Below, in pieces: positions 1 through 29,084 of a DNA stretch of 64,000 nt. How positions within the stretch are numbered: the first letter of the stretch is position 1; each line of letters opens with the position of its first letter. The notes beneath the pieces are model-generated. The model saw nothing but the letters and a program-made list of their open reading frames with translations, was not told the origin of the DNA and made no database searches. Source of the stretch: Tetramitus jugosus (Eukaryota > Protista > Heterolobosea); the NCBI GenBank assembly GCA_937625935.1, contig OW569352.1, forward strand, positions 1 to 64,000, in the 5' to 3' direction. Both the position numbers and the translations under genes were made by a program.

Positions 1-862
1 CAAACCCAAACCCAAACCCAAAACCCAAAACCAAACCCCAAACCCAAACCCAAAACCCAAACCCAAACCCAAACCCAAACCCAAAACCCAAACCAACCCA
101 ACCCCAAACCCAAACCCAAACCCAAACCCAAACCCAAACCCAAACCCAAACCCCAAACCCAAACCCAAACCCAAACCCAAACCCAAACCCAAACCCAAAC
201 CCAAACCCAAACCCAAACCCAAACCCAAACCCAAACCCAAACCCAAACCCAAACCCAAACCCAAACCCAAACCCAAACCCAAACCCAAACCCAAACCCAA
301 ACCCAAACCCAAACCCAAACCCAAACCCAAACCCAAACCCAAACCCAAACCCAAACCCAAACCCAAACCCAAACCCAAACCCAAACCCAAACCCAAACCC
401 AAACCCAAACCCAAACCCAAACCCAAACCCAAACCCAAACCCAAACCCAAACCCAAACCCAAACCCAAACCCAAACCCAAACCCAAACCCAAACCCAAAC
501 CCAAACCCAAACCCAAACCCAAACCCAAACCCAAACCCAAACCCAAACCCAAACCCAAACCCAAACCCAAACCCAAACCCAAACCCAAACCCAAACCCAA
601 ACCCAAACCCAAACCCAAACCCAAACCCAAACCCAAACCCAAACCCAAACCCAAACCCAAACCCAAACCCAAACCCAAACCCAAACCCAAACCCAAACCC
701 AAACCCAAACCCAAACCCAAACCCAAACCCAAACCCAAACCCAAACCCAAACCCAAACCCAAACCCAAACCCAAACCCAAACCCAAACCCAAACCCAAAC
801 CCAAACCCAAACCCAAACCCAAACCCAAACCCAAACCCAAACCCAAACCCAAACCCAAACCC
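1..862 (+). repeat. Telomere, (CCCAAA)n = (TTTGGG)n on the G-strand
   Basis: Near-perfect 6-bp tandem array at the contig start, C-rich strand 5'. Length variants occur only in the first ~150 bp. Confidence 0.97.
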
Positions 863-939
863 ATGTAAATAACTTCAGAACCAATAGATAACGAACAGAT
901 ATGATAATTTTGACGTAGAAATGCTCTGAGTCCTGAACA

Positions 940-1175
940 GTCAAAAAGAAAAAAGGTTGGGTAAGGGTTTATACACTGGTTGGAGGAGAAGTCAACCCTA
1001 AATGTACTTTTGACATAATTAGTTCGCGATTCAACAGAGATTCAATTGAAGATTCATTGAATGACTACAGAGTCCCCTACGACCTATTCTGTAGATATAC
1101 AATCAAAAAGTAAAAAAGGGTGGGATTTGGGTTTATATGCTGGTTGGAGGTCGATGCAACCGAAATCTGCTTTTC
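940..1175 (+). repeat. Degenerate subtelomeric repeat, two units ~162 bp apart with a GG-rich telomere-like core
   Basis: gtcaaaaagaaaaaaggttgggtaagggtttatacactggttggagg (~940) aligns with atcaaaaagtaaaaaaagggtgggatttgggtttatatgctggttggagg (~1102). Related cores occur at ~2521, ~2693, 3218 and inverted at ~1595-1625. Confidence 0.6.
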
Positions 1176-1710
1176 AACAGAAGCACTTGCACTTTAGTAC
1201 AGATAGATCAGAAAGACATCAAATCAAACTACTTAAAAATCAGGTTGCGGCGTATCTATAAATCGTAATTAGTAGTCACAGATCATGATCAAGACAAAAT
1301 ATAGTTAACTATTGACTGCCATTGTATTTCAGGTTGAACTCCTTCACAAGTCTTCTGTTATATTCATGTTGCTGTATTGTATTCCTTCTGAATTCGTTGT
1401 AATCACTTCGCTCATTGGTCGAAATTCTTTGCTGGATCCAAAAAGCTCCACTGACAAATGACCTGAGATGAAATACAGGAAATCATTTCACGGTCCTGGA
1501 CCGTGAACCTCCCTGTTCGTTGAACCTCAATATCTCCGATCTGATAATAGACTCCAAAATCCATTCAACCCTTGTCCTATATGTCTTCTTTTTACTCCCT
1601 CAACCTATAAGCCACAACTCAACCGAACTAAATTTTGTTTTTACACTAAACTGTAAATTTCAACGCTCTGATACCAAATACAGCTAAATTCTCGGGTTTT
1701 CCTTAACAAC

Positions 1711-1956
1711 AAGACAGACCCAAACCCATCAAAAACCCAACGCAAAAGGAAGTTTTTGACGGAAAAGGAGTCCGTTGAAGCCGAATGGGCTAAACGTTAC
1801 AAAACTCCTGCACAGTCCATTGACTGGGAGAGCCAAAGTGACAATACAACTCCTGCATCTAAAAGAGTGAGAGATGCAGGAAGATGTGTCCTTGATAGGC
1901 CTACCAAACATGTCAAACGTCGTAAACTCGACAGTATGGACTACAAGTGGTATTGA
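1711..1956 (+). pseudogene. Small basic ORF with NLS-like KRRK, copy A (no upstream ATG)
   Basis: Reads ..DPNPSKTQRKRKFLTEKESVEAEWAKR..SKRVRD..KRRKLDSMDYKWY*, homologous to 4009-4311. In-frame stop at 1669-1671 and no ATG before the conserved part. Confidence 0.55.
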
Positions 1957-1977
1957 CCGGAGTTGTGGAGAACCGGA

Positions 1978-2244
1978 ATCGTACGGGGTATGATCCGGAG
2001 ATCCTGAAATTGCCCTACGGGCAATTTCACAACACACGTGTCCCTCAACAAGTTTGTGCAGGGCAGTTGACCTGCACTTTACTATAAAATAAAAAAATCT
2101 GTGTGCACTGTGCATTGTTTAGGCACCGCACCGGAATTGCGCCCAGCCCGAATATTGTTTGCGCAATACTGCACACTATTATAACAACAACAACATCTCA
2201 CTCACCACTCCAGCACCCCATAGTTAGTGTTTGAACCCAAACCC
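1978..2244 (+). ncRNA. Structured 3' RNA of the element, copy A
   Basis: Hairpins at 1978-1994, 2005-2029, 2056-2077 and 2101-2176, with compensatory changes relative to copy B. Confidence 0.65.
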
Positions 2245-2259
2245 AAACCCAAACCCAAA
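2234..2259 (+). repeat. Interstitial telomeric repeats at an element junction
   Basis: aa(cccaaa)x4. Confidence 0.9.
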
Positions 2260-3217
2260 TTTACTTTCTTCTCAAAAATCTAAAATTTCATCCAAATTCC
2301 AAACATAATCGATCTATCATCTGAAAAATGGTCCATCAATATCTATCCAAGTTAAAATCACTCGATTCTTTCCTACTTGCATCTCTTGATCCTCATTCCT
2401 TAGTCTTTGTCGAAAACCAATAGTTTCATCAAATGCTCAACGTCTGAAAGGACTAGAGGCAATCAAGTGAGTCAACACATGTGTTATGAGCAATTATTTC
2501 TATCACACTGAAGTTATGAAGGGTGGGTCTGGGTATTCAACTCTGCACTCAAGGAATTCTGAACAATAGAAATATAATTCTCTCATGAGCTCATCTCCCT
2601 CCTAAATAGTATTTTCTGCAACCTTTCTCAGTCAATTACGTCCATAGATATACTTTCTTATTCAACAAGAGTAACTACACTTGATATATGAGGCGTTGGA
2701 TCTGGGACTTCAGCTCTGCATTCATATGACAAACTAAAACGTTTAGATCTCATTCTGTCAGTAAAAACTGTCAAAAAGTCCTTCTCCAGAATGAAACATC
2801 GCATTCATAATCATCAGTTCTCATAAATCGGTTGACTTCTCCATTTCAAAAGAATTTCAAGTCATTCCAAAGTTAAAGCACTGAAACCCAACTCATTCTG
2901 CCAAAAATCAACAAAAAGTTATAGAAATTAGAGAATGAACGCTCCAAATGCACACCAGGTCAGTCCAAAATCTGAAACAACTGTTCTCTAATCTGACAGT
3001 CCAGTCAATCATATACTTCTAAAAATCACTGTCAGAAACAATCTGTTGCAGTTTTAACCATTTTGCAGAGAAAAATTGTTCAATACAGTAGAGATAGATC
3101 GTCTCCTCAAGACGATACTTCTCAAATTTCGGTAAAAATACTGCCACACTGTTCCGTACTGTCAGCTGAAGCCGCCAGTACTCTCAAAACTCAAAAATAA
3201 AAATCGGAATAATTGTC

Positions 3218-3273
3218 GGGTTGGGTATGGGTTTACCAAAACGCGGATGTAACACCAAACCCAAACCCAACCC
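3218..3273. repeat. Inverted repeat of telomere-like arms (16 of 17 bp paired)
   Basis: gggttgggtatgggttt (3218-3234) versus aaacccaaacccaaccc (3257-3273). Confidence 0.75.
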
Positions 3274-3892
3274 CTGGATCTGCACATCCAATTGGAAAAA
3301 TACTACGTGAACTATGCAGTTCCATTATGGCGCTTTTGCTTCAATGTTTACCAGAAACCATTGAACAAGTACATGTACTCCATGTACAAATCAGCGTCTT
3401 CCTTTGCAGCAAGGAAAGGTTTTATCACGGGTGAGTTGGTGAGATACGCTCGCCTTGTTGATCATTTCAAACAATTTGATTCAATGCGAACATTGTTTGC
3501 CTCTCGGCTAAGAAGAAGAGGATATGACCACCACTTCGTACAACGAATGTTCACAAAGAACAATTACTTTGCACTCGTTGAACGATACTGCAAACCTATT
3601 GACTGGCAAGCTAGAGTGAACAAGTACCAACAAAAGTTGGACTTGCAACACAAACCAAACATTCCACCAATTTGGAAAGTGTTACACTCTGGCAGTGGCA
3701 TCAATTATCGACAATTGATCAATGCCATTTCTCTCTTCAATGAGATTGATTTGCCAAAGGAATTGGTCATTTGCAAATGTCATACTTCCCAACATCAGAG
3801 AAGTGCTGCACACATGCAAAACCAAATTCAACACTTGGGTGCAACAATGTGATCCAATGCCAAACGAAGATAAAAAGAAGCTAGGAAACTAA
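3274..3892 (+). pseudogene. C-terminal fragment of a Penelope-like reverse transcriptase
   Basis: LDLHI..VYQKPLNKYMY..KGFITGELVRYARL..FASRLRRRGY is the characteristic PLE motif-7/thumb signature. A probable frameshift near 3787 leads into PNIREVL..KKLGN*. No GIY-YIG or HNH domain follows. Confidence 0.8.
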
Positions 3893-4008
3893 TGGACGTT
3901 GTTGTTGGTAATCACAAACGTCGTTGGTAGCGTACTTCATTTGCTGCACAACGACTGATCCGATCATTTTCGGAAAGGGGAAGTGGTTATTCAACAATTC
4001 GACGGCAG

Positions 4009-4311
4009 TTGCAGTTGCGACTTCGCAAAACATCACGCGGGTGCGTGATGCTGACGAAGTCAGCAACGCGCCCGATCCCAAACCCACCCAAGACCCAGAA
4101 CAAGAGGTACTTGAGTGAAAAGGAGGCTGTCGAAGCCGCAATGGCTAAAAGACAGAAAGCAACTCCTTCACAGTCCACATGGGACTCCTGCAATGTGAAT
4201 ACAACTGTTGTATCTAAGAGAGTGAGAGATACAACAGGTTGCACATTAATGCAGAGTGCACCCCGCATCAAGAAACGCAAACTTGACAGCATGGACTACA
4301 AGTGGTACTGA
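4009..4311 (+). CDS. Small basic ORF with NLS-like KKRK, copy B (first ATG at 4048)
   Basis: Protein-level conservation with copy A and an identical C-terminal KLDSMDYKWY*. Confidence 0.5.
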   Translation: MQLRLRKTSRGCVMLTKSATRPIPNPPKTQNKRYLSEKEAVEAAMAKRQKATPSQSTWDSCNVNTTVVSKRVRDTTGCTLMQSAPRIKKRKLDSMDYKWY

Positions 4312-4334
4312 ACCACGAGGAATGTAGTGGATAA

Positions 4335-4644
4335 CCGTACGGGGTACGGCTCCAACTGCAATGACAATTCGCCAACGGCCAATTGAAATGGTCCTACGGA
4401 CCATTTAATTGGCCCAATGGGCAATTGCAACCTTCCGAGGTTCAAAACTTTTGTGCAGGGCAGTTGACCTGCACTTTTAGTATAAATAATAATGTTGTGG
4501 TGTAGAGTGCTCATGTTTAGGCACCGCACTAGATTTGCGTCCAGCCCGAATACCTGTGTTGCACGTAAATATATCACAACTAACAACAACAACATCTCAC
4601 TCACCACTCTCAAGCCCCATAGTGGAGTGTTTGAACCCAAACCC
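4335..4644 (+). ncRNA. Structured 3' RNA of the element, copy B
   Basis: Hairpins at 4335-4349, 4386-4406, 4453-4474 and 4494-4580, then a CA-rich linker and terminal aacccaaaccc. Confidence 0.65.
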
Positions 4645-4669
4645 TACCCTGGCAAGATGATGAATCTGG

Positions 4670-5199
4670 GTGGAAGAACCAACGGAAAATATTTCAGATA
4701 ATATCGAGGAAATAAACAACAGGCTGCAGAGAGGACGCGGAGCTTGTGTGATGGTTGAGGGTACACCACAGTACAGACGAGTCAATCGCATGGGAAGGAT
4801 TTTACCAATGCCTGACCTCGTTCCTGGAACATTCGTCGCAACAAGTTCCACCTTTGAAGAAAGACTTCAAGCTTTGGAAAGTCTATCCACCCTCGGAATT
4901 GCACCGAACACTTCGAAAATAAGAGAATATGCCGAACGGAACTATCTGATGTTCTGGGAGGACATGTGTCTGGATAAGAACTTCAAGGCCTATCAATCAG
5001 AGCCATTTCCGATCAAGAAGGTAACTTTTCTCATGTTCCTGTTCTCTATGAGGGTGGAGCCGAGATACAGCTACAAGACCGTGAGGGATACATTTGCTAA
5101 TAGCCTGAGCAATCACCTTAGGGACACCAACAGGGGAATCCAAAGGGTGACTATGGTCTGGATATTTCAAATTTTCTCAGAGCTCTGTTGAGAAAATAG
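4670..5199 (+). pseudogene. N-terminal (core-binding/SAM-like) fragment of a tyrosine recombinase, DIRS/Crypton-like
   Basis: GIAPNTSKIREYAERNYLMF..PFPIKKVTFLMFL..YSYKTVR matches the pattern of eukaryotic YR N-termini. Frameshift near 5135 and no catalytic domain. Confidence 0.5.
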
Positions 5200-27565: not shown

Positions 27566-27685
27566 GTCTACGTTCATACAATGGTGGAACCACCTCTTCC
27601 CATTTCGAATAGAGAAGTTAAGCACCATCTGGCTGAGTTAGTATTGAGATAGGAGACTACTCGAGAACCCTCAGTAATGTAGGCT
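27566..27685 (+). rRNA. 5S rRNA
   Basis: GTCTACGTTCATAC..AGAAGTTAAGC..GTTAGTA..GGAGAC..TGTAGGC followed by a TTTT terminator. Helix I GTCTACGTT/AATGTAGGC, helix II ATGGTG/CACCAT, about 120 nt. Confidence 0.93.
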
Positions 27686-28960: not shown

Positions 28961-29084
28961 GTCTACGTTCATACAATGGTGGAACCTCTCACCTCTTCCC
29001 ATTTCGAATAGAGAAGTTAAGCACCATCTGGCTGAGTTAGTATTGAGATAGGAGACTACTCGAGAACCCTCAGTAATGTGGGCT
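28961..29084 (+). rRNA. 5S rRNA, variant copy (4-nt insertion; may be a pseudogene)
   Basis: Identical to the 27566 copy except a ctct insertion after ggaac and an A>G change in the terminal helix. TTTT terminator. Confidence 0.85.

Follow-up and report, generated by a model that had tools for sequence, protein, structure and literature searches.

One question raised by the left end of contig OW569352.1 of the heterolobosean Tetramitus jugosus is why a folded RNA sequence of approximately 300 nucleotides (nt), ending in the complement of the telomere repeat, should be found there twice. The stretch analyzed, referred to as the window, comprises positions 1 to 64,000 of this contig (C9:1-64000) within a searched genome of 26.35 Mb in 56 contigs, and its first 862 bases are (CCCAAA)n, a telomere of the TTTGGG type. 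Both copies of the module are the 3′ untranslated region (UTR) of an endonuclease-less Penelope-like element (PLE), autonomous and approximately 5 kb in length. Comparison among the copies and with a second species supports the view that the fold is under selection, on the sense strand. Its role, judged largely by analogy with related elements, is probably that of a cis-acting 3′ UTR RNA platform, to which the reverse transcriptase (RT) would be drawn and from which the tail would be offered to the G overhang. The parts of the two copies, where ORF stands for open reading frame and MFE for minimum free energy, are as follows.

1..862, + strand: telomere tract (CCCAAA)n; this left end of contig C9 is a chromosome end
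1714..1956, + strand: copy A ORF2 remnant, the last ~80 codons, 57% identical to residues 1154-1232 of the intact copy; stop codon at 1954-1956
1957..2233, + strand: copy A RNA module, subfamily A (MFE folds; match to covariance model R1, 106 bits)
2234..2259, + strand: copy A tail, ~4.5 AACCC/AAACCC units, in other words TTTGGG telomere repeats in reverse complement
3276..4311, + strand: copy B ORF2 remnant, 5′-truncated and decayed, residues ~885-1232, 86% identity, three in-frame stops
4312..4633, + strand: copy B RNA module, subfamily B1 (MFE folds; match to model R1, 158 bits)
4634..4644, + strand: copy B tail, AACCCAAACCC, with unrelated unique DNA next

An earlier inspection of the letters alone, the sequence-only reading, had placed two copies at 1978-2244 and 4335-4644. 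There are indeed two, and the sequence features that it listed are all present where it put them, but the limits must be redrawn: the module starts at the ORF2 stop codons (1954-1956 and 4309-4311), so that, tail included, copy A occupies 1957-2259 and copy B 4312-4644. Alignment of 1700-2270 with 4060-4660 reveals 80% column identity, and the similarity starts upstream of the limits first proposed, within a coding region ending …KRKLDSMDYKWY and a stop codon before both modules, which identifies each module as a 3′ UTR. A 28-nt linker is identical in A and B and occurs exactly twice in the window, where chance would give 0 occurrences. The 100-residue ORF at 4009-4311 is the C-terminus of ORF2, in frame with the 1232-residue ORF2 of the intact copy on contig C10; it is isolated by the stop codons of the decayed copy B and is no separate gene. 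Copy A is truncated at its 5′ side at an internal CCCAAACCC (1719-1727), and short telomere repeats (3254-3275) stand directly 5′ of the copy B remnant.

The full-length copy on C10 consists of ORF1 (322 amino acid residues), ORF2 (1232 residues), the module and the tail, for a total of ~5 kb. Its ORF2, which ends …DSMDYKWY, continues uninterrupted to the …KRKLDSMDYKWY terminus found ahead of both window modules, and carries the RT motifs TDKNLG (the DKN motif), FYLLPKVHK, GRPIVA, PMGTNCAPELAN and RYIDD, together with a weak Pfam RVT_1 match (E = 1.5e-4). A word search returned 38 relatives of ORF2, mostly with precomputed DUF8422 and HTH_animal annotations, the distant ones possessing GIY-YIG in addition; an exhaustive search returned 3595 relatives at E <= 1e-3, only five of them at E <= 1e-30. 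No GIY-YIG domain was found in ORF1 or ORF2 (Pfam, E <= 0.1), nor any endonuclease domain in ORF2, and the same scan detects GIY-YIG in the endonuclease-bearing relative P0025. The RT motifs, the relatives, the pattern of the tail and the lack of an endonuclease domain all support the original suggestion of a telomeric PLE whose 3′ tail is complementary to the telomere repeat. Nearest to ORF2 stands P0001, from assembly GCA_037189345.1 (47% RT identity; the ORF ends …SMDYKWY and a stop codon), on a 3-kb contig; the 3′ UTR of this second species is L028:2781-3065.

A whole-genome DNA search gave 13 matches, the covariance-model search 12 module copies, and 25 ORF2 fragments were found. Half of the module copies (6/12; subfamily B2, on C3, C10, C17 and C48) are near-identical. 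All copies other than the full-length one on C10 are 5′-truncated, and several have telomere repeats directly upstream. Most, the longest included, lie <= ~10 kb from contig ends carrying (CCCAAA)n or (TTTGGG)n, while a few are internal or at distances that were not checked. The sense strand always runs from the telomere inward and the elements stand head-to-tail; in the intact element only ~45 nt separate the tail of the upstream copy from the ORF1 ATG.

Every copy that is intact at its 3′ side terminates in GUGUUUGAACCC(AAACCC)n, the further units numbering 0.5 to 7, and the DNA beyond them changes from one locus to another; the terminal pattern is GAACCC(AAACCC)n, with n variable. Only approximately two units are present where the 5′ end of another element comes next downstream, and since these persist between adjoining elements, at least GAACCCAA(ACC) is encoded by the element. 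A poly(A) tract was found at no genomic copy. On the C-strand the order of sense element, CCCAAA repeats and older chromosome is the one that overhang priming would predict. The genome also possesses a separate TERT gene (Telomerase_RBD, 137.6 bits, C31:284128-284511; L124), inside a 1074-residue open frame; the regular repeats are therefore the product of telomerase, and the element comes in addition to them.

Two decayed copies are internal, at C50:168443-169759 (~169 kb) and C7:597945-598125 (~598 kb), the former running into the beginning of a 5′ end that belongs to another element; both may be remnants of former chromosome ends or of fusions. Three independent copies are truncated at ORF2 residue ~1154/5, where the coding sequence is itself CCCAAACCC (window 1719-1727 and 4077-4089; C3:663; C10:610270), and on C3 and C10 the telomere tract merges seamlessly into this internal motif. 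The site may be a preferred healing point, because a cDNA stopping there would end in GGGTTTGGG, an ideal telomerase primer.

Four sequences were folded separately by MFE: window copy A for subfamily A, window copy B for B1, the six near-identical copies for B2, and the element of the second species, whose UTR stops at the contig end just before any tail. All four share a common layout of helices P1, P2 and P3, an A/U spacer, a long P4, a G-free C/A linker and the tail, and the helices P1-P4 are the same in each despite differing stem sequences. The linker between P4 and the tail is ~55 nt long with almost no G, and the unpaired bases GGG, CAGUUGA and GGCA…CCAGCC are invariant. The folds of the window copies have these parts.

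1973-1998, + strand: copy A P1 (inner stem 1979-1993, loop GGG)
2005-2029, + strand: copy A P2 (MFE fold)
2056-2077, + strand: copy A P3 (loop GCAGUUGA)
2084-2089, + strand: copy A A/U spacer, TATAAA
2101-2176, + strand: copy A P4 (apex GGC..CGCA-7nt-UGCG..CCAGCC)
2177-2210, + strand: copy A G-free C/A linker
4323-4360, + strand: copy B P1 (inner stem 4335-4349, loop GGG)
4365-4426, + strand: copy B P2, triplicated (hairpins 4365-4385, 4386-4406 and 4407-4426; alternatively one long composite stem)
4453-4474, + strand: copy B P3
4481-4486, + strand: copy B A/U spacer, TATAAA
4494-4580, + strand: copy B P4
4581-4609, + strand: copy B C/A linker
4598-4629, + strand: copy B possible P5
4439-4446 with 4630-4637, + strand: copy B possible long-range helix, GGUUCAAA with UUUGAACC

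The stems themselves compare as follows between copy A, copy B and the second species.

P1 inner stem (loop GGG, closing AC/GU): A, UCGUAC/GUAUGA; B, CCGUAC/GUACGG; second species, UGCGAAC/GUUCGCA
P1 outer extension: A, CCGGA/UCCGG; B, GGA/UCC plus 6 bp; second species, CCG/CGG plus UGC/GCA
P2: A, 11 bp; B, three related hairpins, refoldable into one long stem; second species, 8 bp of unrelated sequence
P3 (loop CAGUUGA): A, GUGCAGG/CCUGCAC; B, GUGCAGG/CCUGCAC; second species, UGUGUAC/GUACACA
P4 outer helix: A, GUGUGCA/UGCACAC; B, GUUGUGGUGUA/UAUAUCACAAC; second species, AGUGUGUGU/GCACACACU
P4 apex stem, within GGC(A)…stem-7nt-stem…CCAGCC: A, CGCA/UGCG; B, CGCA/UGCG; second species, UCACA/UGUGA

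The pairings noticed at first sight hold up. P1 is found as atcgtac-GGG-gtatgat at 1978-1994 and as ccgtac-GGG-gtacgg at 4335-4349; the gtgcagg..cctgcac hairpin of P3 is identical in 2056-2077 and 4453-4474; and the outer helices of P4 are swapped around a conserved core (2101-2176 and 4494-4580). P2 was read correctly as aaattgccc-TAC-gggcaattt (2007-2027) and aaatggtcc-TAC-ggaccattt (4386-4406), but the two compensatory pairs seen between them do not constitute an orthologous comparison. The hairpins of copy B arose by local triplication, copy A having one, and because the hairpin of A matches the third of B by position and sequence, the two that were compared are paralogs; even so, they are evidence that pairing outlasted the duplication.

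The folds are more stable than those of dinucleotide shuffles, with z-scores of -4.4 for B, -3.2 for A and -3.7 for the second species, and both strands fold well. The conserved GUUGAC of the P3 loop has complements in the linker, namely GUCAAC in the second species (6 bp; L028:2896-2901 with 3041-3046) and, over 4 bp, the CAAC repeats in the present genome (4462-4468 with 4584-4595); a pseudoknot between loop and linker could bring linker and tail beside P3.

The evidence for selection comes from compensatory change. Covariance model R1 spans P3 to P4 (128 positions, 36 pairs) and was built from copies in this genome only, using an RNAalifold consensus; it nevertheless matches the UTR of the second species over its full length (58.9 bits, E = 4e-9). 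Covariation was counted over the P3-P4 domain in six intact, distinct sequences, where 94.4% of cells form standard pairs and both sides have changed in 14/36 pairs, a number reached by 0/500 shuffles (on average they gave 3.4). As a control the 3′ partner was displaced by 1-3 columns, which leaves <= 5 double-change pairs, and a fresh RNAalifold run on the six-sequence alignment returns the same structure. An 11-row alignment, two rows of which are truncated copies padded with flank, agrees. For P1 and P2 the comparison was manual and used the separate MFE folds, a separate covariance model for P1 having been dropped because MAFFT misplaces its outer pairs. In P1, three different Watson-Crick pairs occupy one position (C-G, U-A, G-C) and one U-A is swapped to A-U, while the GGG loop and the closing AC/GU are constant.

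Several G·U pairs are retained in all or nearly all sequences; as each would turn into an A·C mismatch on the complementary strand, they mark the sense (+) strand as the structured one. Between species the nucleotide identity of P3-P4 is 62-65%, as against 53-59% for the adjoining 3′ end of ORF2 and 60% for the DNA of the RT core. Selection on the structure, as the sequence-only reading had proposed from two copies, is thus upheld by compensatory changes both within the genome and in the second species, which a model built without it finds. The check set beforehand, namely to collect the genomic copies and search Rfam, yielded the 12 copies and no Rfam family, and the covariation is present in more copies than the original two.

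Searches of known RNA families gave the module no name. In a search of the whole window at gathering score no Rfam family matches the module, and a search at E <= 10, made over the window elements (860-4700) and over the intact element plus flanks, found neither a hammerhead nor an HDV-like, a twister or any other ribozyme. The top match below threshold, Gut-1 on the P2 hairpins at 28.6 against the required 50 bits, was taken as chance. A regular expression for the hammerhead (CUGANGA, stem II, GAAA), run over five loci in both orientations, gave 0 candidates. The hammerhead ribozyme was accordingly rejected, its three-helix CUGANGA/GAAA/UH core being absent by Rfam at E <= 10 and by regular expression; that none had been seen by eye thus agrees with Rfam at both thresholds and with the pattern search. 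A coding role was also discarded: the antisense ORFs of 105-128 residues over the module use one frame in A and another in B where they cross the P3 region common to both, and the A/B differences include indels whose length is not a multiple of three.

The Rfam telomerase RNA models likewise gave no match. The module is not a telomerase RNA in the strict sense, because it is present as DNA in every insertion and is thus copied through, and because a separate TERT is present. The likeness to telomerase RNA drawn at the outset holds only loosely. Since the whole module is copied into DNA in each insertion, the tail would serve as a primer-docking site rather than as a reiterated template.

The demonstrated features (the identity of the element, its terminal location, orientation and tail, the telomere-capped truncations and the covarying fold) permit a working model, in which we infer the binding of the RT, priming by the overhang and the manner in which the RNA 3′ end is formed. 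The element RNA would fold into the fixed helices P1 with its GGG loop, P2, P3 with its CAGUUGA loop and the long P4 with its GGCA…CCAGCC apex, and the element's own RT would recognize this fold as the handle on its RNA. The G-free, C/A-rich linker would hold the terminal bases single-stranded, leaving the terminal CCCAAACCC to pair with an exposed chromosome end at its (TTTGGG)n 3′ overhang. With the overhang as primer the RT would copy the RNA from the tail inward, and because the overhang serves this purpose no endonuclease would be needed. The expected outcome is an element with its sense strand running inward and a variable number of telomere units at the 3′ junction, incomplete copies presumably being capped by telomerase.

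Recognition of the fold by the RT and docking on the overhang are most plausible by analogy with the models for Athena, Terminons and Coprina, in which a 3′-terminal fold stands beside reverse-complement telomere repeats that pair with the overhang (PMC6431247, PMC8557442). The RT of a vertebrate PLE initiates reverse transcription inside a stem-loop that is AC-rich and is able to start internally on unprocessed RNA, and hammerhead cleavage is unneeded in vitro (PMC11167929). In the light of these properties the C/A linker and the missing ribozyme are less puzzling.

Transcript data are limited to contigs. The search of public runs found one RNA library, a soil metatranscriptome, with 12% of the sampled words, and three runs of the source organism whose type is unrecorded. 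One contig of the metatranscriptome covers 4435-4644 with B2-type differences at a depth of ~2 and continues 30 nt beyond the tail into B2-type flank; a near-identical element exists in soil.

Several points weigh against the platform model. The hammerhead, the proposed maker of the RNA 3′ end in other PLEs, is absent here. The covariation rests on approximately four independent lineages (A, B1, B2 and the second species, which gives one copy), and the alignment used in the count was fitted to the model. The metatranscriptome contig may be contaminating DNA or a read-through transcript. Nor did the metagenome, word, exhaustive or last-100-residue searches produce further module-bearing relatives. 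A metagenome scan with the RT alignment gave 80 distant PLE loci with a best-segment identity of <= 34% (strongest matches 22-28%) and no R1 match; a word search with the C-terminal third of ORF2 gave one decayed copy from the second species, without the module; the exhaustive search of representatives gave four more close fragments, all from the assembly of the second species and none with the module; and a search with the last 100 residues of ORF2 found nothing.

One relative at 36% RT identity, from two public runs (L029 and L030), possesses ORF1, ORF2 and a 160-nt 3′ UTR (L029:3631-3792; L030:3265-3426), which ends …GUUGCAAACCCAA at the contig end, a CCCAAA-type tail with terminal …AAACCCAA. 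This short UTR has neither a significant fold (z = -1.7) nor an R1 match, which also counts against the model. As L029 and L030 keep the tail with no module or significant fold, the fold is not universal even among close kin.

The alternative that survives best, although we regard it as unlikely, is that the module acts as DNA, as a promoter or pseudo-LTR for the downstream element, with the TATAAA of the spacer setting a start inside P4 from which transcription would proceed through the tail into the neighbor. The 3′ ends of HeT-A act in this way as promoters for their downstream neighbors. Here all three lineages have kept TATAAA in the spacer (at 2084-2089, at 4481-4486 and at L028 2918-2923), the elements are arranged head-to-tail, and the metatranscriptome contig passes through the tail into the flank. 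Because TATAAA is conserved and the 5′ leader amounts to only ~45 nt, the module may also be a promoter, and pLTR promoters have been described for PLEs (PMC11167929). What a promoter leaves unexplained are the compensatory double changes and the conserved G·U pairs in the stems, and downstream of most copies lies unrelated DNA, not another element. The promoter is compatible with an RNA role, and both could hold.

A bolder proposal, which we consider distinctly unlikely, is that this PLE lineage swapped its hammerhead for an unrelated and hitherto undescribed RNA fold, be it a new self-cleaving motif by which the CCCAAACCC 3′ end is set free or a telomerase-RNA-like scaffold keeping the TERT-sister RT on the tail. 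In the scaffold case, if true, the element would be a living model for the telomerase ribonucleoprotein arising from a retroelement.

It is improbable that the fold is primarily an element for stability, export or translation of an mRNA possibly lacking poly(A). The 3′ UTR is structured, conserved and on the sense strand, as such a function would have it, and no poly(A) tract accompanies any genomic copy; yet the constant company of the C/A linker and the telomere-complementary tail would go unexplained, as would the complete module retained by short 5′-truncated units that are unable to encode an RT.

Highly improbable, in our estimate, is a new self-cleaving RNA that replaces the hammerhead and cuts read-through transcripts just after the CCCAAACCC tail. 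The near-general occurrence of hammerheads in other PLE groups, and their position beside telomere-complementary repeats in the telomere-associated ones, speak for a substitute here, where none exists, as does a conserved multi-helix fold with invariant unpaired GGG, CAGUUGA and GGCA…CCAGCC; in subfamily B the possible long-range helix GGUUCAAA/UUUGAACC brings the tail to the junction. That helix is weak in A, however, the contig of the second species ends before its position, and none of the known ribozyme families gives a match, not even at E <= 10. Self-cleavage may moreover be dispensable, because a PLE RT can start internally on unprocessed RNA (PMC11167929).

The weakest alternative, that palindromes without function were spread by duplication and the copies are alike by recent common descent, draws on the near-identity of 6/12 copies, the local triplication of P2 in B and the good folding of both strands, but is already disfavored and very improbable, as the element of the second assembly (47% RT identity) keeps every helix with different stems and identical loops, 14/36 double-change pairs stand against ~3.4 in shuffles, G·U pairs are conserved and the UTR is as conserved as the DNA of the RT core.

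Endonuclease-deficient, telomere-associated PLEs are known as Athena and Terminons of bdelloid rotifers and as Coprina of fungi, diatoms and Selaginella (PMC8557442, PMC6431247, PMC13159263). The Tetramitus element is a new member of this known group, and its 3′ module is a hammerhead-free terminal fold not in Rfam. It resembles Athena and Coprina in its PLE-type RT with DKN motif and thumb, its lack of GIY-YIG, its one or two ORFs within 4-6 kb, its location at chromosome ends in head-to-tail chains with telomere-capped 5′ truncations, and the short run of reverse-complement telomere repeats right after a structured 3′ terminus. It differs from them in having no hammerhead (on neither strand does the element contain a CUGANGA…GAAA core), its place being taken by a ~270-nt four-helix module with the ~55-nt G-free C/A linker, and in its TTTGGG telomere unit, a repeat reported as the telomere candidate of another heterolobosean, Naegleria gruberi (PMC3622300).

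The absence of the hammerhead matters because hammerheads have been reported in nearly all other PLE groups, with or without endonuclease, the exceptions being Naiads and most Chlamys (PMC8557442). In the telomere-associated PLEs it is the characteristic 3′-terminal fold, immediately 5′ of the reverse-complement telomere repeats (PMC6431247; PMC4209133).

As in telomerase RNA, a structured RNA with a telomere-complementary stretch would be used at the chromosome end by an RT of the TERT-sister clade. Endonuclease-less PLEs are the closest mobile relatives of telomerase. Unlike telomerase RNA, the complementary stretch stands at the extreme 3′ end, where it would dock a primer and is not a recopied template, the PLE RNA doubles as mRNA and is copied whole into DNA, and the genome has its own TERT and a regular telomere. 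R2 and the telomere-specific SART1/TRAS of Bombyx, which are site-specific non-LTR elements, possess a folded 3′ UTR upstream of the RT start whose shape is conserved over its sequence and which is thought to be the RT's handle; they differ from this PLE in the class of RT, the presence of an endonuclease, the poly(A) or target-derived repeat ends and the priming at a nick. The head-to-tail arrays at chromosome ends, the fixed sense orientation and a 3′ UTR that is possibly a promoter for the neighbor recall HeT-A and TART of Drosophila, which are, in contrast, non-LTR elements of the jockey clade with poly(A) in a telomerase-less host, whereas here telomerase and regular repeats coexist with the element (PMC5537684).

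The remainder of the window offers a few further observations. The stretches 863-1713 and 2260-3253, which flank copy A, are generic subtelomeric repeats found at most chromosome ends in constant orientation to the telomere. The former is 100% identical at three other ends (C39, the right end of C3 and the right end of C9), which suggests recent exchange between chromosome ends. At the 3′ end of the subtelomeric repeat is a telomere-like fold-back (window 3215-3275) consisting of GGGTTGGGTATGGGTTT, a short loop and AAACCCAAACCCAACCC. It stands just 5′ of truncated PLE copies, and the same design in another sequence is present in the second species (L028:100-150; L111:75-125 and 2290-2335). Deeper in the window are two 5S rRNA genes 1.4 kb apart (27566-27685 and 28961-29084), a 104-nt tRNA match that probably bears an intron (52917-53020) and a U6 snRNA gene on the minus strand (55665-55769).

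For the telomeric PLEs the consequence concerns the way in which they find chromosome ends. The published model rests on a hammerhead beside telomere-complementary repeats, and here the tail and the telomeric lifestyle persist without it. The Tetramitus element extends the telomeric PLEs to an organism with TTTGGG telomeres and adds a candidate new family of cis-regulatory RNA. With a defined RNA of ~330 nt and a defined RT, it can be asked whether a PLE RT recognizes a specific fold, whether the overhang alone primes and whether self-cleavage is needed.

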